Below, piece after piece: positions 26,354 through 43,654 of a stretch of DNA of 64,000 nucleotides. The translations under genes and the position numbers were made by a program. Each line of letters opens with the position of its first letter. Within the stretch, counting starts at the first letter, position 1. The notes under the pieces are model-generated. The model was not told the DNA's origin. It saw only the letters and a program-made list of their open reading frames with translations, and searched no databases. The stretch lies in assembly GCF_964204645.1 (NCBI RefSeq), contig NC_134031.1:19785910-19849909 (forward strand), in the 5' to 3' direction. The DNA comes from Tubulanus polymorphus. Its lineage: Eukaryota > Animalia > Nemertea.

Positions 26354-28259
26354 CTAGTCCCTGCGCAGCGGTACTCGTTCGGTTTGTACACCGTCTTTAG
26401 AGATGACCTGCACCAGTAGAGTATCTCCGGTGTAAATGTCGCGTTCAGCTGCCGATATAAACACGTCTTTCACGAGAGCGACGGCTTTCTCGCGAGACAA
26501 CGGAACCTGTTCAACACCTTCCATATTCTTGAAATTAATCTGAAATTAGATTGAAATCAATAGTACAGATCCGACGAACAGGTGATACACAGTCAAATGC
26601 CGTCCAGTCGTCACAAATTTTTGAGTCCCAATTCAATTCGTTATAATGTAATCTACAGAATCTGCAGTGGATCAGTCGTTACAGCGAACTTCACGGAACC
26701 AGATACATGTAATATGTTCCTTATAACGGTTCGTTATCCGATGAATAGTTGTAACCGAGTTCGTTATAACGAGGTTCAACTGTAGATGGATAATAGAGTA
26801 AAATGTACCTGGTTGTCGAGTAAAGGCTGTAACATAGAACTGGCAGTTCCAGCAGCGCGACAAGCTTCTCGTTCATACGAACCAACAGGATCAAAACTGA
26901 ATACGCATCCTTTACCTACAAACACAACAAATACGTCAAAGAAAAATACGAAGTTTTTAGCAAATCTGCAGTCTTCAACAAGCATCATTTCAGAATGGAT
27001 ATGTTTGTTCTTTAATACTACATTCACCAGTTGGCCATTTTCCCCCCATTTACTACAAATTCCCTAAGTTTCACCATATATCTATTCCACTCAATTCCTC
27101 AAGGTGAATGGAGAATTTGTGAATAATATGACATATGCATTTTCTCTTCAAAACACTTGCGAATAACTTGTACCTTCTTCGTCGAGTCCAGCAATGATAT
27201 TATAAACATAGAACGGAAAGAAACGTCGATAGTATAACATCGTTGACACCATGGCGGCTACCGCCGGACTGGACATCTTTTTATTGTGTTCATGTTCGTA
27301 AAACTACAACAAAAACTAGCAAAATTACCATTTAAAAACATGATGTTTCATTTATCCAGGTTTCATGAATTTATCAGGAAATAGTTTATTATAACGCCAT
27401 CATTTTTAATGTCACTGCTCATTCTTAACGCCAACAGTTTTCAGAGAACAAAATCTGCTCAATCTAATAAACTCAAACTCAATCTAACTCAAAATCAATT
27501 GAAATACCAATCTTTATAACTCTAAATTTTTAATTGATCCAAACTTTTACTGTATAAACATAGATTGAACTACCTTTAAACGTGCTTCAATTCGTTTCGT
27601 GAATGTTAGGATATCTCCGTGAAAACCAGAACATCCTAATATAGTCTTATCACTCCTGAAATAAACATAAAAACATATATAGGAATACCGTCTATCAATA
27701 GGCGCGAACAAATTCAGCGCTGTTTCACTGATATTTACAGCTGATATGTTTTTGGAGAATCCCTTGTGTAAATGGAAAATCCTTCACTCAAACGCGTGTC
27801 CGAGGCAATCACAGCGAAATCCTCACCTGCCACTGCCAACACAGTCCTAAATACAACAACATTAATATCACGATGTTATTAACTAGGAAATTGAAGAGAG
27901 GTATTTGGAGAAACGGTTTAACTGTACCCATGATTGTGTCCCTGGCCTGGGGAGTGGGGGTCCCAAATCTGGACAAACCAAACCCAACAACGGATCCCTC
28001 TTTGTCAGAAATGCCAATAGAATGTAAACCACTTGGCAAGTATGTTATTTTGGGGGAAAGTAGTAGTTATGCCTAAACTGGGCGAAAGCTCTATGAAGTT
28101 TCACTGTAAACTACTAGTGTGATTTTGCTATAATTTGTCGGTTTTTAATGACTAATTCAGGTCTTTGCGAACTTACCCGCCGTTCATCGTATACGGGGAG
28201 AAATGATGCTGTTTTGGATTAGCTCCATAACCGGCTATTCTTTCTACAGACGCTTGCAT
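26354..28259 (-). CDS. PSMB1: Proteasome subunit beta type-1 (beta6); exons 28259-28177, 27846-27739, 27655-27574, 27303-27174, 26915-26809, 26539-26354
   Basis: Spliced protein reads [107 protein letters not shown]; junction phases are consistent. Confidence 0.96.
26590..26784. mobile_element. Tc1/pogo-like MITE remnant in the last PSMB1 intron
   Basis: Ends ..cgttataacgaggttcaactgta with internal gttata motifs; the same terminus type occurs at 32533-32549 and 22243-22258. Confidence 0.5.
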
Positions 28260-28511
28260 CTCGGCTTGTTTCCGACGATTCAATTCAAAAAATTGCTGAC
28301 AAATCCAATATGGCGGCGCCCTGTGAATGTCCCGGTGCGGCGTAAAAACCTGTGGCGCTTCGGGCAATAAACAAATTTACTTGCATTGAATGAAATGGAT
28401 TCACTCACTCGATTCTCGAGAACACCAAAACACTTCCGGGTTCGTTTTCGGATTTTTCGTCGCTTCAAATCTTAGATTTCATCATCTTTTCGAAATTGAA
28501 TCGTGATAATT
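28260..28511. promoter_or_regulatory. Bidirectional housekeeping promoter shared by PSMB1 and FARSB
   Basis: Divergent ATGs 252 bp apart; YY1-like AATATGGCGG at 28307-28316; ETS/GABP-like CACTTCCGG at 28431-28439; CpG-rich. Confidence 0.75.
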
Positions 28512-33298
<4,787 letters not shown>

Positions 33299-33857
33299 AT
33301 TGTATTTCGCTGATTTTGTTGTGCTAAAGAGATCATGTGGATTAAATTATGATGTATTAACTAAAGTTATGAAATTTTTGTTGTTTTGATTTCGGTAAAT
33401 TATTGAATCAATTTGTTTACGTGATTCAACATGTTTGATAGATTGGATGGTCTTTCTGAGGAGGCCCCAAACTAATAGATGTGTCCCATTTAGATGGCTT
33501 TTTGTATGGAAAAATACAAATATTTCATTTTAACCATTGATGAAACACTGTCCGTACTGTAATTCCTCACAAGATGAGTCCTATTGGAATAAAGTTAAAA
33601 CGTTGAATAAACTACGATGGGCCCTTATAGCTCAAGGAAATATTTCGGTTTTTATTTTCTATCATTAGTGTTGCATTTTACATCAAATGCACACTTGGCC
33701 TTTCTTTTGCTAGGAAATATACGAATTATGTTGATAGCGAGCGGAAGACTCGCCGCGGAGTATAAGTTAGGACCCTCAGAACTGTTAAAACGAGCTGGAG
33801 ACTCGCCGCGTCGCGTGCATCAGCCGCCAACATCTCTAGAACTATCTCTGAAGAGAG

Positions 33858-36800
33858 ATGAAAGTGGAAATAATGGACGATAAACCTTCTGATAAAGGTA
33901 ATTAATTCATCTTTTCTCATTAGATTCTTCATTTTTCATGTGCGCTATAGTTTATAGATTATCGTTAGATTCACTGTTTGTGTTTATTGTAAATGAAAGC
34001 GTCGCAAATTCGATGTTTTGTAGTCGATTTTTCCAAGAAAGTAGTCTGTGATTAAAACGTTCGTTCTGATCCGATTCAATTTTTGCAGCAGTTGTTATTG
34101 TTTTTACCGATTTGCAAGAGGTCCTGCAACTCAGTGTTCATTGACGGTGTGATGTTTGCCAAGCATTCAGATATTTGTTGATGGTTATTCTTAAACATTC
34201 CAAATTGTTAAAATGTTTGTCTACATCCGAGCCAGTAGGCAGTGGTGTTTATTCCCGGCCCTTTATCCATGGTGTGTCAAGGATTCTGGTTTAGGTGGTA
34301 GGGATACTACTGGTGTTCTACAGGTTTCTCAGTCAGTATTTCGCCTTGTCTTTTGTTCACCTCCTAGCGACCAATGGATGTTCCAGACTCCAGAGGCTCC
34401 TCAGCTTGAGCAGAAAACTGCTTGGTTCACTAGCTGTCTCCTGTCAGTCAGTAGCACAACAATCATGGCTTAGTAGATTTTGAGTCCAGTGTATGTCCAT
34501 CTGGGTTAACTATAGATATACCAATCTGATGTTAAACCACTTGGATTTGTCATGACATCAGCACTAAGGTTTAGGCTAGTATCAAGTCATAGCTACCAGT
34601 GACTGTAGTGAAGCACTCTTGCATGCAATTTACTAGGAAAAATGTCTTTATTTCTGAACCACGTATAAGAAAATGTGCTAGGCCTATTTCAATTGATGGA
34701 AAACTCAATCTTTTTGGAGTGATTTTACCCTGTCATAACATATTCGGGCAGTTTATCGCCTACCTAGCTGTTATCTAGGTTATGAACTTAAGTTTAAGGA
34801 GATTTTTTTAGTGGAATATTTTGTATTCATATCATTTATGAACTCGAGGATATTTTTATCATTTGCCTATAGTTTATTTCAAGTGTTTATTCTAAAGGCA
34901 GGTCTTTATTTAGATTGTGAATGCCACTTCTGCCCTCAATGGTCTTCTATCTCAGTTGATAATTACACGCATGAAATCTGTGACCCCGAAGTGCATTCAA
35001 TAAGGGCGGCTGATTTTTTCGCACACTTTGCAAGATACAATGTTTAAGCCAGACGAATAATAAATTATCCGCCTGGAGAACTACCCTCTCAGACATTTGA
35101 TACTTTAAGCACTGTTCTTCAATTTCTTATGGTCAAGGCTTCTCATGACGTGTTCAGTACTTCACCTGAAGTATCTTAAAATCAAAATCAACTACAAACA
35201 CCAGACATTAGGATATTCTAATAGTGCAGTTTCAGCAACTGATTGTCCGCGCTTCGCTTTGCAATGGTAAATGTCGTCCAAAGGGATGATTCTAGGCTGC
35301 AGATTTAAAACAAATGAATTAGATATCAGACAATGCCTGAATACAATACTAATCTGAGGCTAATCTAAATTCAACAATGAACCAAAGTATTTTGTTAACT
35401 GAAATTAGACAGACGGTTCGTAAACACGCCTTTCACCAATTCATTCAGTCATCATAAATAAAAAGAACCATCTCAATATTCAATAGCTATTTTTTCGATG
35501 GTGCTTCGATCATAGATTGAAGGGTTTTGTGGGTACTGCTCGGAAGAGTGTGTGTGAATGACTGTTGTAGAGGAATGTTTCGCAGAATATTTCTTACACG
35601 AATCTCGAAAACCATTGACACGAATCGGTATAGACTGTATTCACTACTCAGTGTAATAGCGTACCAGTCAGTCGGTCGGTCTCCACCCATTGTATTCAGT
35701 TAGTACCGCGCTAGTCTAACTATCTAATACCGGGCGAAGTAGATACTTATTATTATCACTGGTAATGTATTGATGTTTCCTATCGATTTATATCTCGTCT
35801 ATGCTTCTACTGTGCATTCATTTGGTATTTTTTCAAACGCTGAAATCGATTGATTTCTCACCTGTCTCTATCGATAGAAATAAGCTGTTTTTATGCATTT
35901 GTTCCTATTGGGATAATGTGTTAATTCTCGGTTTCGTTTGTTTCTATGGGGAAATAAGATAAAACTAACTAATTGCGTTCGATTGAATTCACTTCAGCTG
36001 ACAATTTGTTCCGATGTTCGTGAGCTTTGTTGTTATACAAAATTCTAAACAATCTGAAGATAGATTTTAGATTAGAGAATCTCCTTATCAGATATAACAT
36101 AATATATCTTTCAAAATTGAAAAATCTCGAGAAAGTGCCGACTTTAGATATATATTGGTTGGTTATATTTGTTGTCTGATTTTTGTCTCTCTCCTTGTTT
36201 CTTCCACAGGCATTGAGGCATTCTGAGAGTGTTGTTGCCGTGTGAATGTGGATCAGATAAGAAGAGAGAGAGAAAGGAGTGAGATGATATTAATAATATA
36301 TCTAAAACGTACAAAAAATCACGCAAAAAAGTTGACTCGAAAGAAACTAGTAAAAAAACTTCCGCATTTACTTAGTGTTAACAACTGAGGATTTTAACAT
36401 TTCTAGATACAGCAGCAGCAGCAGTTAGTGCTGGTCGGGTTATATTCACTGTTCTCAGAGAGCTACCACTCGGTCGGTCGTCGATGTAAAGTTAGTTTTT
36501 GCGGTGTGTATGTACAGCTCACAGTATTGGATATAACAGTTCTACGAACAAAAAGCCTCCTAACGTTTAGCTGTATGCGCCGCGCGCTGAAACAAGTTAC
36601 CGGTAAAATACATTACACTCACACATCAATTGATGCTCGAATCTATATTTATTAATTTGTGACTAGCGTTTGATTGAACGGTCTCTCGCAGACGCCCCGC
36701 GGTCTTTTACGAATCATCAGTAGAAATATTCGTTCTTATTTATCGTTGTTGAAACGAGTCTGGAACGATGAACGAACCGATGACGAACGGACCGACGAGC

Positions 36801-39800
36801 TCGAGTCACGTCGAGTTATTCGTACGCGCCGGACAGGACGGTAAATGTTACGGAGCGTCGCCGTTTTGTCAGCAAGTGTTCATGATCTTGTTGTTGAAAG
36901 CCGACGACGATTCGTTGTCGTTCCGCGTGACGACGGTCAACCCGGCGAAATCGCCGCCCGAGTTCAAGAAGCTGTCGAATCGTCTTCCGACGCTCGTTCA
37001 CGGCAACGAGGTACGTAAAAACTCGGACGAGATCATCGAATACATCGACGAAACGTTTCCGAAACCGTCGCTCGCGTACGACGACCGAAACGCCGAATCC
37101 GTCTGTCTCGAGGTGTTCTCGAAATTCGCGTATTACCTGAAAGAGGTTTCGCGTTCGCCGACGCAGCTAATCACCGAACTCGGTAAAATTAACGAATTCC
37201 TCGACGCGGTCGGAACGCGGTTTCTCTGCGGCGATCATCTCACGCATCTCGATTGTTTGATGTTGCCGAAGCTGCACCACATCCGCGTGACGGTGAAAGC
37301 GTATAAAGACTTCGAGATACCCGCCGAGTTCCGCGCGTTGTGGCGCTACCTGAAGAATGCGTATGAGACGGACACGTTCCAGAAGAGTTGTCCTTCCGAC
37401 CAGGAGATCGTTTATTACTGGTCGGAGAAGCCGGAGACTCCGCAGCTGCCGACGGAGGCCGCTGTGAAATACGCTCCGACTGGAGATCCGTTTTATTCGT
37501 GGGATACACCGCTTTAAACTGCTGCGGAATTATTCGCTTATTCGCGCATCGTGTTTATACAAAACGGCCAAGCTTTACAAGAATTAAACAGCCAAGCTTT
37601 ACAAGAATTAAACAGCCAAGCTTCACAAGAATTAAACTGCCAGGCTTTACAAGAATTAAACAGCCAAGCTTCACGAGAATTTGGAAAAGCGTAAGATTGA
37701 AAAATATAAATGGATTCGACAAGTACGGGAAATACCGCAGGGCCGTACATAGGGAGAGAGTTGCCCCCAGATATTTTGGGATAGAGTACCCTTTTCACAA
37801 ATATTATTGTCATATCTAATAGAATTCACTGATGGTATTGACTTAGCAATTTATTATATAATTGGAAAATCGTTTTTGATTTGAGGTAACTGCCCTATTT
37901 CTGGTTTCTCTGTCCCCCCCCCCCTACATTCGAATGCTGTTTACGGCCCGGGACGGTCATAGAGAAGGGCTTCCGAATATGAAGTCATCAGATGACACAT
38001 TTTACGTGTGAGAGTTGGAGAGGATAGAGAAAAGAGTTTGATGTGGTTTTCGAGATGCTCAATATAGTAGTTTGCTTATACAGCTTCAGTCTGTAGTGAA
38101 GAATGATATTCATATACATAAGTATATTTAATAGTAGCTTTAGATTTCGAATAGAAAGAAATTCATTTACACTTATGAAAGTATTGCACTTTAGTAGATT
38201 AGATCTCTGTAATGTTGGGCAGCATTTGTTGAAGCGACTTTGAATGACTTATCCCAGTAGTAGTTAGTGTTTAGATGCTGGTTATGTTAGAAATACAGCT
38301 CTAACTCACCCTTCGGACATCCACCCAATGATGATCGCTTTTTGAGGTAAAATGTCTAATATCTGGTGTTCCTTTTCAAAATTAAATCTGTGAAAAAAAT
38401 TAGAGGTATTGTTGTATGATGAACGTGTAAAGTATGGAATGTCTGAAAGATCGCAGGGTTAGGTCATTACAGTAACTGTACCCGTAGACTAGTATACCTG
38501 ACCTCCCGCCCAAAACACTTAAACAAAAGTGGGCATCATACAAACTGGGATAGTCAAACATAGCTTCCAGAGAAACCAAGCCCAGTATTTGATTTATTAC
38601 ATAAAGATCTGATTAGTTTAGTTAAAGTTTCTGTTGTCGATGTTTTTATTCATTGATATTTAATTCATCTGTGTTTTTTACGAAGTTGGTTTTTGTGGCA
38701 TTTTGTACAGAAATATTCACATTCTGTCCTGATGTATTTTTCTCTGTGCATTTCATAATCGATTGCTGTATTTATTCCTATATCATTAATAACAGGGTTT
38801 CCAGTGGTCCTTCCAAGTCCTTCTTTTGGAAAAAGTTTGGACAAACATCATCTTTGTCCTTCCTTTTGATGAAAGTCCTTCCGATTTTAATTTTATTTTA
38901 TTACTCAGGCCTGTTAATTCAATTGTCAGTGAGAATGAATATTCTGAAAAATGTAAGACTGGTCTACATGACTATTAGTATTCCGGTGAAGGCATTGCAA
39001 AAAAAGGCCCTCACTTTACTGGAAAGAACTTCTTTCTGAGTCCAAAAGTCCCTCTCTTGGGTCTTAAATTGCCGAAAAGTCCTTCTTAGTACTTCTTTTT
39101 ACCCTGGCCTTACCACTGGAAACCCTGTTAATATTATTATTATTATTATTATTCAATCTTAATCATCAGCTATTGATTGTTTTATGGTTCATCTATTTAA
39201 TGTTTTGTCAGTTTTCTTACTCAGTATTTTAAATACCAGTATAAACTGTCATATATGTTCATCTATTTGATGTTTTGTCAGTTTTCGTACTCAGTATTTT
39301 AAATACCAGTATAAACTGTCATCATATCGTCATGTTTTACCTGTTTATCGAATGTCATATCAATTTTTTTCACTTTATTTTTGACGGGTTAAGATGCATG
39401 CAAGCTAGAAAAAAATGTCCTATGTTTTTCAGTGATCTGAGTTAAGAATTAGAAAAGTATTATTTCTTTATTTATATGTGTATTTTTGTGTCATTAGCCA
39501 AATGATTATTTTTTCAAAACTTTGTCTTCCCTGAATTTTGAATACACTTGTACGGATTGTAATCGGTGCTTATTTTATTTCACTATGTAATACATTTACC
39601 AGTAATGAAATATGTAATGCGTTAATGTTAAAAATAAGTGATGTCACCAATGCAGGTATTGATCTCCTGCCTAGGGTTATTCCTGATATCAAGTATTTGT
39701 ACATGGAGTAAATTTTTCATTGAAAATGTCCTGGATCCAGTTCCGCAGTTGTGAGTTAGAAATTCAAGTTGAGAGTTAACTCCAAGTAGTAATTAGTTGT

Positions 39801-42752
39801 TTTTTTTGATGAGGTAACTCTCGAGTCAAATCTTAACAAATTAGAGATAAGATAAGTACATTTTGGATGAGTTCATTCATAAGTAAATTCTTTACTCAGA
39901 AATGTGTGACTCTGGGTCCTGGACACAGAATGAATATCTGAGGCTGGGGTCCAGGCTGAATTTGATACCTATGCTATGATACCCCTTTGCGTACCATCCG
40001 GTGATATGTACAAATTCGATAGGTCGGTTCTTCACAAAGATGGATATGCGTAATGCTACCTCTTCTCTTCCCAGAACTGCTTGTGTTTACAAACTATAAT
40101 TCAAGTACAAAGCAACCAGATGTGAGTAATATTCATATGTTCCCGAAATTGCTGAACAATTAGTCACATTAAACATTCTATTAATTGCTTAGTACTTCTA
40201 ACGCTGCCATTTTATGCATATTACGCATATTACATGAATTGTGTAGTACATGTATAAACCTCCTAATTTTACTCTGAAAGTCTCAAATGTTTGTCCAATT
40301 TGTAGTCAATTCTTTATGGCATAATGTTTATATAATAGATCTGAGAATTCGAATTCAGTATTTTTCTCGCTGTAGTGTTATTAAGCCGGGTTCCAGTTAT
40401 TATTACGCAACTGGAATTGCTTGCTCTAGATTTGAATATCTAAGTCATTAGTGAGTAGATTTTTAATTCGAACTCGGGCTGCAATCTATTTATTTAGCAA
40501 TAGTTATTCAGTTCAATAGGTTTTTTTTGCGACTGCGGAGTACCCAATTTTATCGTCATTTTCCCGGTATTATCGTAATTGTATTCAGCTTTTACTTTGT
40601 TTTGAAGTATACGATGCAATATATGTAACGTTCAGTCTATCAATGTCTACTGTCTCTTTATCTCTGTACTATTTTACTATGATATCATGTAATACCTCAA
40701 TCTGTTTCAAATATATGCTGTTTTCAGTTGAGATTTTTTTGTGACTTTTTTCATTGTTTTCTCCCCGATTCGTCGGTAGGTCTTCGCGATCATCTAAATT
40801 GTCTTTCATTTTTAACGAATTCTCCGAGAACAAGTAAGTTTTATTGACGTCTTTTTCCCGAGGATTGAAATGAGAAAGGTCCCAGACTTAGTACAGGTCG
40901 TCGGTATGTTATGTTTTAGTGGTTTATGAAGTAGGTGGTGGTGTTCACACGGTTTCTCTGTTTGCTCGCAAAGAACTCTCATACTCGATTACCATTTACA
41001 TATTACATGAAGTGAATGTATGTACATTTTTCCACTGTTTGCGCGGCATATGGCGTTAATTTCAGCCGCTTTTTGCCGTCATTGATTTCACGTGGAGCTT
41101 CGGTCGGTTTGGGCAGAGAATCATTCTCTCACGACATTTAATGCTGCTGTGCTGTCCCTGGCTAGATAGCCGGTGTCTGCGGATACCGGCTAAATCGTCT
41201 GGTCATTGATTCATGTGACGTTCCTGTTTGTTTTATGTCTAAATTTGAAATTTTCTCTGGGTTGATAGAATGTGATTCTGACATTTGCCCCGGTTCTGAT
41301 ACTGTCCCTTTGATGGTTTTAAGCTTTGATGGGACCTCGCTTCAAGTGCTGCCCCCTGGTTGGGATGCGAGCGTTTTTGAATTCGAACCTCTTGGGAAGA
41401 CTATACTAAACAGTCCGTTAATTATAGAGACTTCCTTAAATACGATCGACTGTTGTCAGTTGATTTGGAATACGTGTATTTGAATTTTTGACCTTTCATT
41501 TCGAATGTTCATCATACAAATTCAGCGGTATATATGGATATTTTCGGTCTGATCAATTATAGATATTGAAAGCTGTGAATAAATCAAACACCAATACTAT
41601 AGTAGTCTGTCCCGCCGGCCCTGACGACAGCTGTTACTTAACGATTGTCGATTATAGCAATAATTTATGGCAATTTAGATTATCTTGCGATTTATCGACG
41701 AGATTCTTTTCCACCACTTCGCCATCTATCGTCGGTTATTTTGTATAATTTGTGGTCATTTCTTTTTTATCGACAGGATCAGAAGATACGGTTGCCGAGG
41801 CGACGCAACCTGGAACTCCAGCATCAGTAGCTCCATCGACTACTACGCAATCGGAAGTGCCGAAATTGAGCGGGCCTTCGCTGTGCGATTTCACACTGCA
41901 GCTCGACGATTATACCCCGACTGTAAGTCGACGGTTTCCTCCTGGGAGTCTTCAACTAAAACAAAACTTTAGTTTATCTGATTAATATTGTCTTCGTTTT
42001 GACCATTCGTCTTCTTGATAAATGCGTGTTTTTGAATCAGAGATTTTCTTCCATGAAGGAAGATTATTTGTTTGAAGTTAACTGATTCTATAAGAAATAT
42101 AGCTTTTATAATCGGATGGGGCTCAGAATACCAACTAGTGAAAATATCCGATCGTGAAATCAAACCACTGACTGACAGGTTACTGTCTATCCGCTACTAA
42201 TCAACTGTCGCTTTATCGCGTAAATGGTCATGTATATTGTAGATTCCCGATGCAGTGACGTCATATTATTTAAACCGATCCGGATTTGACACATCGGACC
42301 CGAGAATGTGAGTAAATTTAGTCAACGAGAAGTGAAGGGCTCCTAAAATGCGGGATAATTTTCGAAATCTGTATTCATTTTCAGAGTGCGACTGGTGTCA
42401 CTTGCCACTCAAAAGTTTATATCCGATGTAGCTAACGATGCGTTACAACATTGTAAAATGAGAGGCGCTGGACAAAGCTCTAAAACTAAGGGCAAGGTAT
42501 TTATCTATCTAATTCATCATAACATTAGTTCTTGATGAAAACTTTTCGTAATGAAATTTAGGATGAAGACTTTCAACCCCTTGGCCCTATCAAAGTAGAC
42601 CGGGCTCGGTAGAAATCTTTTACGCTGTATGTCGATGATCATGCTCATTCTCGTTTTCCTAGGATAAAAAGTACACGTTGACCATCGATGATCTAACACC
42701 AGCCTTGTCCGAATACGGCATCAACGTCAAGAAGCCATATTATTTCACGTAA
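33858..42752 (+). CDS. TAF10: TFIID subunit TAF10; exons 33858 (or 33873)-33897, 41777-41922, 42243-42307, 42385-42496, 42663-42752
   Basis: LCDFTLQLDDYTPT|IPDAVTSYYLNRSGFDTSDPRI|VRLVSLATQKFISDVANDALQHCKMR..|DKKYTLTIDDLTPALSEYGINVKKPYYFT* is unmistakable TAF10. The first coding exon (MKVEIMDDKPSDK-G, phase-1 donor at 33898) is inferred and less certain. Confidence 0.88.
36768..37517 (+). CDS. CLIC: Chloride intracellular channel protein (CLIC/EXC-4-like, GST fold), single coding exon, 249 aa
   Basis: VELFVRAGQDGKCYGASPFCQQVFMILLLK..FRVTTVN..PPEFK..FLCGDHLTHLDCLMLPKLHHIRV..FEIP..LWRYL.NAY..FQKSCPSDQEI. Confidence 0.93.
   Translation: MNEPMTNGPTSSSHVELFVRAGQDGKCYGASPFCQQVFMILLLKADDDSLSFRVTTVNPAKSPPEFKKLSNRLPTLVHGNEVRKNSDEIIEYIDETFPKPSLAYDDRNAESVCLEVFSKFAYYLKEVSRSPTQLITELGKINEFLDAVGTRFLCGDHLTHLDCLMLPKLHHIRVTVKAYKDFEIPAEFRALWRYLKNAYETDTFQKSCPSDQEIVYYWSEKPETPQLPTEAAVKYAPTGDPFYSWDTPL
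37562..37681 (+). repeat. 24-bp tandem repeat, 5 copies, just after the CLIC stop codon
   Basis: (aaacagccaagctttacaagaatt)n with single substitutions. Confidence 0.95.
38793..39127. mobile_element. MITE with 16-bp perfect terminal inverted repeats (CAGGG-type)
   Basis: cagggtttccagtggt at 38793-38808 / accactggaaaccctg at 39112-39127; internal gtcctt motifs; AT-rich flanks. Confidence 0.75.
39187..39322 (+). repeat. 70-bp tandem direct duplication
   Basis: gttcatctattt[a/g]atgttttgtcagttttc[t/g]tactcagtattttaaataccagtataaactgtcat occurs twice. Confidence 0.92.
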
Positions 42753-43654
42753 TAAAAACGGATGCGATGAATGAATGTTACTGATCCACAGAAATCAGAT
42801 CTAAAACCGTTTGTTTCGAAAACGGATTTTTCCAAAAAGCTCCAACAAGGTGTTTGAACTGTAGGAATTGTGGACTCAATTTTCCAAGTTAATCAAATAT
42901 GAGATATAATTGGAAATGTGCCCGTTCTTTCGCGAAATCTGATATTTTTCGTAAAAATTCTTGTGAAATAAAAACAAAAATCTATATACATGTATATAAG
43001 TCATTCGTGTATAAAGTGTGTGTACCAGGAAAAATGACTTTAATGACTTGAAGTTTAATAGAACAAAGGAAAACGTAATGTCCAATAAAGAAAACTGTAT
43101 GAAATAAATTTTCGATTGATTTTTTCTGAAATTTTAGAACTTATCTGGAAATATGATTTGTTGATGTTGATGTTGATGTTGTGGTTGACTGGAAGCCTGG
43201 TCTGGCTAATCTCAAGTATCCCGGAGCAGCAGTTAGCCGATCGTTATTTCTCAGAAAATTATCGGTTGGCAGCTGTTAAACTACTATTAGAAACTAATCC
43301 AAAAAAAACTTACAGAATTATTACACATGCAAAATCTCGTTCATTCTTTCATTTTCAAAAGTAACGATCGTGCGGGCGTGGCCATTTCTCTGTCCCAATC
43401 GAGGTATTTCCTGATTTGCATAAGGGAATTTTTTCTGAACGTGAAGCCTGGAACTCGAACCCAATCAAATCAAAAATTTTCCACGGATGGCATCTTCAAT
43501 GCGAAATTATGACAAGAAAATTGATGATATGATCCCCGCTCATCCAATGCCAGTGTTTTTCCAAGGATCGAACCTGAACCCTAGAACTCAAACCAACCGG
43601 GAATAAAAACTACAGCACTGTCCGGACTGCAATTAACAATCTCAGTGTAGAGTT

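Follow-up and report, generated by a model that had tools for sequence, protein, structure and literature searches.

A CLIC gene nested on the same strand within the first intron of TAF10 in the nemertean Tubulanus polymorphus

Nested gene pairs in which both members lie on the same strand are a common kind in animals. One pair with a shared 5' exon is the cholinergic locus, where that exon is non-coding and both products act in one pathway. In that locus, ChAT intron 1 contains VAChT (PMC3053374). The pair described in this work consists of TAF10, which encodes a histone-fold subunit of TFIID and SAGA, and the chloride-channel-like gene CLIC, and lies in a stretch of 64,000 nucleotides (nt) of the Tubulanus polymorphus genome (contig NC_134031.1, positions 19,785,910 to 19,849,909), which is referred to as the window and whose positions are used throughout. 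A complete CLIC gene lies within TAF10 intron 1 on the same strand, as had been claimed in an earlier note made from the sequence alone. The nesting is supported by the exact match of a public protein to the far first exon of TAF10, by the single copy of TAF10 in the assembly, and by the same nesting in another nemertean, Lineus longissimus. Same-strand nesting obliges the host polymerase to ignore the poly(A) site of the guest and the first donor of the host to skip the acceptor of the guest. The locus is read here as an ordinary but old same-strand nested pair in which CLIC would mainly be its own transcription unit, and we give this reading a probability of about 0.55.

TAF10 gene structure and its far first exon

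The TAF10 model of the window was compared, separately for each exon, with the public NCBI protein P0273 (transcription initiation factor TFIID subunit 10-like of Tubulanus polymorphus, 150 amino acids (aa)), which was found by a word-plus-profile protein search seeded with the TAF10 exons of the window. P0273 tiles exactly onto five exons of the forward strand. Exon 1 (33858-33897) consists of 13 codons and one base and ends at a phase-1 donor; it encodes residues 1-13 (33858-33896) and supplies the first base of Gly14. Exon 2 (41777-41922) carries residues 14-62, with residues 15-62 at 41779-41922. Exon 3 (42243-42307) carries residues 63-83 at 42243-42305, exon 4 (42385-42496) carries residues 85-121 at 42386-42496, and exon 5 (42663-42752) carries residues 122-150 at 42663-42749, followed by the TAA stop at 42750-42752. 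Exons 3, 4, and 5 match the Pfam TAF10 family (4.2e-11 for exon 4 and 2.4e-08 for exon 5), and P0273 as a whole matches the TAF10 histone fold (PF03540) at 5.6e-43 over profile positions 3-102 of 102. Intron 1 (33898-41776) is 7,879 nt long, introns 2-4 are 320, 77, and 166 nt long, and every TAF10 intron has GT/AG ends. Both split codons are consistent between P0273 and the window, where Gly14 is formed by G and GA across intron 1. TAF10 is a single-copy gene in the 268-Mb Tubulanus assembly. A search of 33000-43500 against Rfam, TAF10 intron 1 included, gave zero matches.

The earlier note had argued that the exon at 41777 is in phase 1 and needs a coding exon upstream, for which it had proposed 33858-33897 as the best candidate. 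The raw sequence and P0273 agree with the first part. Exon 2 begins in phase 1 after an AG acceptor, its frame holds no ATG upstream of 41777 or before the histone-fold region, and a stop lies just before 41752. The second part is borne out by the exact match of P0273 and by the donor at 33897 (AAG/GTAATT), which has the top simple donor score among the 222 candidates that run from an ATG to a phase-1 donor between 33000 and 41776.

The public TAF10 protein is a pipeline prediction, and the far first exon could in principle be an artefact of gene prediction, with the true start nearer 41777 and CLIC merely an upstream neighbour as in the chiton described below. The 222 candidates include two nearer ones at 41235-41271 and 40870-40903, and the CpG observed/expected ratio is elevated from 40.2 kb on, both of which would suit such a start. 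We nevertheless regard this as improbable: the best donor score belongs to the far exon, exon 2 offers no in-frame start ahead of the histone-fold region, and a very small phase-1 first exon that lies 8.7-13.9 kb upstream is likewise part of the public models of Lineus and of the annelid Owenia.

The CLIC gene and the history of the nesting

The CLIC coding sequence (36768-37517, forward strand) is one exon of 249 aa that lies wholly inside TAF10 intron 1. The protein has an N-terminal CLIC-type thioredoxin-fold domain (Pfam CLIC-like_N, PF22441; E 2.2e-17; 63.5 bits against a cutoff of 23.5) and a C-terminal GST-like all-helical domain (GST_C_2, PF13410; 3.1e-06). Among solved structures, it matches human CLIC2 (2r4v; 4.3e-38; residues 12-216) and Drosophila CLIC (2yv7; 2.4e-37). 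Human CLIC1-6, Drosophila Clic, and EXC-4 and EXL-1 of C. elegans have the same two-domain thioredoxin/GST-like organisation, with similarity over the full length. The Tubulanus protein differs from the CLICs with a C-P-F-[S/C] motif at the glutaredoxin-like site, where it reads S-P-F-C: serine replaces the first cysteine, so that the vertebrate-type cysteine is missing at the aligned position. Lineus CLIC (L005 15443-16198) reads C-P-F-C. Some invertebrate CLICs also do not have the first cysteine, and the serine is thus no bar to membership of the CLIC family.

The comparison of gene order in related genomes, which the earlier note had called for, gave the same nesting in Lineus and un-nested linkage in a chiton and in Owenia. 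Tubulanus polymorphus is a palaeonemertean, and Lineus longissimus belongs to Pilidiophora, the other deep nemertean branch. Its annotated TAF10 coding range of 15.4 kb encloses a single-exon CLIC of 251 aa on the same strand. TAF10 exon 1 of Lineus has 16 coding nt and a phase-1 donor, and intron 1, whose junction joins 10016 to 23909 on L005, is 13.9 kb long. The conserved end of TAF10 exon 2 shows 85% DNA identity between Tubulanus and Lineus. In a sensitive blastn comparison of the two species, the coding exons aligned and no non-coding alignment was obtained. An exact look-up of the Lineus TAF10 and CLIC proteins gave matches on the genome alone and zero RNA-derived contigs. The CLICs of Tubulanus and Lineus form a clade with support of 98/88 in a maximum-likelihood tree of 70 CLICs, and one nesting event in the nemertean stem is therefore sufficient.

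The two genes are un-nested in the annelid and in the chiton. The first coding exon of Owenia TAF10 measures 13 nt and ends in phase 1, and the 8.7-kb intron 1 that follows contains no CLIC; much of the length of this intron is taken up by a set of endonuclease and reverse-transcriptase open reading frames (ORFs) of the long interspersed nuclear element type (L006 13735-17030) on the same strand. Owenia CLIC, which is intronless, shares its chromosome and strand with TAF10 and precedes it by 475 kb. In the chiton Liolophura sinensis (CM072728.1, 11,535,303-11,555,359), CLIC is intronless and precedes TAF10 by 16.7 kb; both genes are on one strand, and the interval between them is free of annotated genes. 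The exon that holds the chiton TAF10 ATG has a strong acceptor 27 nt upstream. In the chiton, CLIC and about 6 kb beyond it are depleted in CpG, and about 10 kb of CpG-normal DNA follows before TAF10. This pattern suggests that CLIC and TAF10 are two separate transcription units in this species. In the brachiopod Lingula, CLIC is effectively single-exon (802-nt range, 266 aa); this is a LOW QUALITY model with one annotated frame correction, and its translation is inexact against the query. TAF10 is absent within 10 kb of Lingula CLIC.

The CLIC-then-TAF10 arrangement on one strand is therefore old in Lophotrochozoa. The enclosure of CLIC by TAF10 looks nemertean, being present only in the two nemerteans among the sampled taxa. 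The CLIC coding sequence is intronless in the annelid, the chiton, and the two nemerteans, and effectively so in the brachiopod, and each of them likely has an intron in the 5' untranslated region (UTR). Vertebrate and ecdysozoan CLICs typically carry coding introns. The pattern suggests an old loss of CLIC introns or an old retroposition in Lophotrochozoa. A recent retrogene insertion was ruled out as the origin of the nested gene, since the intronless coding sequence of Owenia, the chiton, and effectively Lingula is older than the nesting.

The intronless state could also mean that the nested ORF is an unexpressed or decaying retrocopy that sits in the intron by chance, the more so as contig C1 (30243128-30243937) carries another, divergent CLIC-like gene that is interrupted by one or more coding introns. 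This is hardly credible. The nested ORF is uninterrupted and resembles CLIC families and solved structures along its entire length, and it has an orthologue at the same position in Lineus. Of the two Tubulanus copies, it is also the closer one to the annelid, brachiopod, and mollusc CLICs (55-60% identity), whose coding sequences likewise lack introns in Owenia and the chiton and, in effect, in Lingula. The gene on contig C1 is multi-exon and only 31-45% identical on the two matching exons, so the nested CLIC is the canonical orthologue and not a spare copy.

Three further contigs with CLIC-like or Lineus-like sequence were seen. L004 (brachiopod-like CLIC), L015 (a Logan contig of SRR22388065, 3,461 nt), and L016 (Lineus-like genomic sequence) are too short or unrelated for testing the nesting. 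The CLIC relative on L015 has a long branch and an ORF lengthened to 342 aa, and it is sister to the nemertean CLICs in the tree. A proteasome alpha fragment lies 1.3 kb upstream of it, in what is a very compact genome.

Transcription of the two genes

As an independent nested pair, the locus would work as follows. TAF10 would be transcribed from a compact promoter some 250-500 nt beyond the 3' end of FARSB, with a start near 33.79 kb. The TAF10 pre-mRNA would run through CLIC, and splicing of 33897 to 41777 would remove the whole of CLIC with intron 1. CLIC would for the most part be expressed independently, with a promoter and a leader exon located inside the TAF10 intron, and would be polyadenylated well before TAF10 exon 2. 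The nesting would derive from an ancestral tandem CLIC-then-TAF10 neighbourhood and would have been fixed since before the split between palaeonemerteans and heteronemerteans. It was probably kept because the guest is hard to detach from the host without damage.

The CLIC 5' leader region (36210-36767, forward strand) holds three candidate 3' splice sites, with exon starts at 36210, 36407, and 36692. The pyrimidine tract is best at 36210, a site that leaves six ATGs upstream of the CLIC start. The site at 36407, which had been named in the earlier note, does have the AG and leaves four upstream ATGs, and its pyrimidine tract is much poorer than that of 36210. The site at 36692 gives a leader of 76 nt with zero upstream ATGs. 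This distance is comparable to that of the ATG-proximal candidate acceptors about 100-190 nt ahead of CLIC in Lineus, a second heteronemertean Lineus-like contig, Owenia, Lingula, and the chiton. As the acceptor is also present in Owenia, Lingula, and the chiton, where CLIC is un-nested, it is no pointer to TAF10 exon 1. The leader intron would be an ancestral feature of CLIC that is independent of the nesting, which implies a leader exon that belongs to CLIC itself. A CpG-rich patch at 35.4-36.1 kb in Tubulanus could be an internal CLIC promoter, although the CpG observed/expected ratio is patchy, differs between species, and is weakly suggestive as a promoter mark.

Another scheme has one promoter at about 33.8 kb that drives both genes. 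Splicing of exon 1 to TAF10 exon 2 would give TAF10, splicing to an acceptor ahead of CLIC and polyadenylation downstream of it would give CLIC, and the TAF10 AUG would open an upstream ORF that limits CLIC translation. The layout fits this scheme, with an intronless CLIC in the first intron of the host, on the same strand, and candidate acceptors before its ATG. The conservation of the nesting in two deep nemertean lineages fits as well, as does the frame in Tubulanus: a phase-1 junction from 33897 to 36407 gives a host frame that stops at 36487-36489, ahead of the CLIC ATG, which is the short ORF that had been expected from this junction. The Lineus frame speaks against the scheme, because the ORF from the TAF10 AUG, which would be present on any CLIC mRNA joined to exon 1, continues in another frame for 32 nt beyond the CLIC ATG and should strongly cut CLIC translation. 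The shared exon would moreover be coding, and its AUG has a purine at -3 in Tubulanus and Lineus alike. An exon 1-led transcript would be a poor design for the main CLIC mRNA. The presence of the CLIC leader acceptor in un-nested genes and the distance between the two genes in Owenia, which indicates that coupling is not obligatory, also count against the scheme, and we know of no functional link between TAF10 and CLIC. We hold the scheme to be possible but unlikely, and a single promoter as the main route to CLIC to be somewhat unlikely. A TAF10-CLIC fusion protein was considered and rejected, as the frames fall apart at every candidate acceptor.

Several points weigh against independent expression of CLIC and towards the single promoter. 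Neither a leader exon nor a promoter for CLIC was identified. The Lineus intron upstream of CLIC is without a CpG-rich promoter-like patch, the sole such patch upstream of CLIC being that at TAF10 exon 1. Some splicing of exon 1 to CLIC is mechanistically likely, as on a TAF10 pre-mRNA the CLIC acceptor becomes available to the exon 1 donor sooner than exon 2 does. Given the ancestral gene order, an origin of such a unit is also plausible, with transcripts from an upstream CLIC leader exon reading through to the TAF10 acceptor. In the fullest form of this proposal, the locus would be a conserved nemertean dual-output unit that was born when CLIC-leader read-through captured TAF10, with the TAF10 AUG as an upstream ORF that throttles CLIC. 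We find this form doubtful. If it were true, the balance between a basal transcription factor and a CLIC protein would depend on the choice of splice site and poly(A) site.

Possible poly(A) signals lie on both sides of the sequence downstream of CLIC. A 24-nt tandem repeat of about five units (37562-37681, forward strand) follows directly after the CLIC stop and contains ATTAAA at 37583, 37607, 37631, and 37655, which are possible proximal poly(A) signals. A hexamer scan of the forward strand recovered the AATAAA that had been reported near 41578 (41578-41583), and it is the only canonical hexamer on this strand between the CLIC stop and 41777. The strand bias of poly(A) hexamers in the introns is inconsistent (3 sense and 18 antisense in Tubulanus; 18 sense and 9 antisense in Lineus). 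The intron downstream of CLIC also holds an inverted repeat that resembles a miniature inverted-repeat transposable element (38780-39140; arms of 29 nt separated by 303 nt) and, next to it, a tandem duplication of 70 nt (39187-39322). These repeats are more like intronic repeat DNA than a conserved 3'UTR.

On the upstream side, the last coding exon of FARSB (33155-33298, forward strand) matches positions 172-214 of 214 of Pfam tRNA_synthFbeta (E 5e-12) and ends with the stop at 33296-33298. AATAAA is present downstream of this stop at about 33590 and about 33606. Because the 3' end of FARSB is on the same strand, the TAF10 promoter is confined to roughly 220-250 nt before the TAF10 ATG. The presumed TAF10 promoter and 5'UTR (33738-33857, forward strand) are CpG-rich, with an observed/expected ratio of 1.3-1.4. 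Two 20-nt GC-rich direct repeats of family D5 (33738-33757 and 33791-33810), 53 nt apart, flank a TATA-like TATAAG at 33761. The 11-nt core of this repeat occurs in two copies there, against 0.32 expected in the window. As a genome-wide motif the repeat was rejected, since it gave 43 matches against 15 for the control and many of them came from one tandem array.

The wider neighbourhood was also inspected. FARSB is a multi-exon gene (28503-33298, forward strand) that sits between zinc-finger genes and TAF10. ORF fragments that resemble a proteasome subunit, as judged by eye, lie at 26354-28367 on the reverse strand. In Lineus, a zf-met/jaz zinc-finger gene lies directly upstream of TAF10 exon 1, and the neighbourhood is partly syntenic with that of Tubulanus.

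Comparison with known nested genes

The earlier note knew of no description of the pairing of TAF10 and CLIC. This claim stands in part: a full-text search gave no paper that links the two genes in this way, but both gene models were already public. What is new is the nesting in Lineus and the linkage in the chiton and Owenia. As it stands, this work mostly confirms public gene models and adds a small comparative observation, and the pair is notable for its age and its visible un-nested precursor. The retention of the nesting from the base of the phylum onward, together with the un-nested tandem state in the chiton, provides a dated natural series for the origin of nesting from neighbours. It also lets one examine what maintains nesting, be it a function or the difficulty of reversing it.

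The TAF10-CLIC pair resembles the cholinergic locus (VAChT/ChAT; unc-17/cha-1 in C. elegans) in that an intronless guest lies in the first intron of the host, in the same orientation, and in a layout that has been conserved for long. It differs in that TAF10 exon 1 holds the start codon of the host, whereas the shared cholinergic exon is non-coding, and the sharing of an exon is putative here. It also differs in that the nesting is restricted to nemerteans among the sampled taxa. If exon 1 were shared, the pair would be a second, unrelated instance of the cholinergic-locus design, with an essential housekeeping gene as a member.

Hitchhiking retrogenes that have borrowed the first exon of their host are similar in having an intronless guest in the first intron, on the same strand, with an acceptor before the ATG. 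The CLIC gene differs from them in that its intronless state predates the nesting, and the borrowing of an exon is again putative. The pair shares with ordinary same-strand nested genes of animals that the whole guest coding sequence lies in one intron of the host and that the host reads through the poly(A) site of the guest. It differs from them in that the nesting has been kept across the deepest sampled split of the phylum and in that the older tandem linkage is still visible in the chiton and the annelid.

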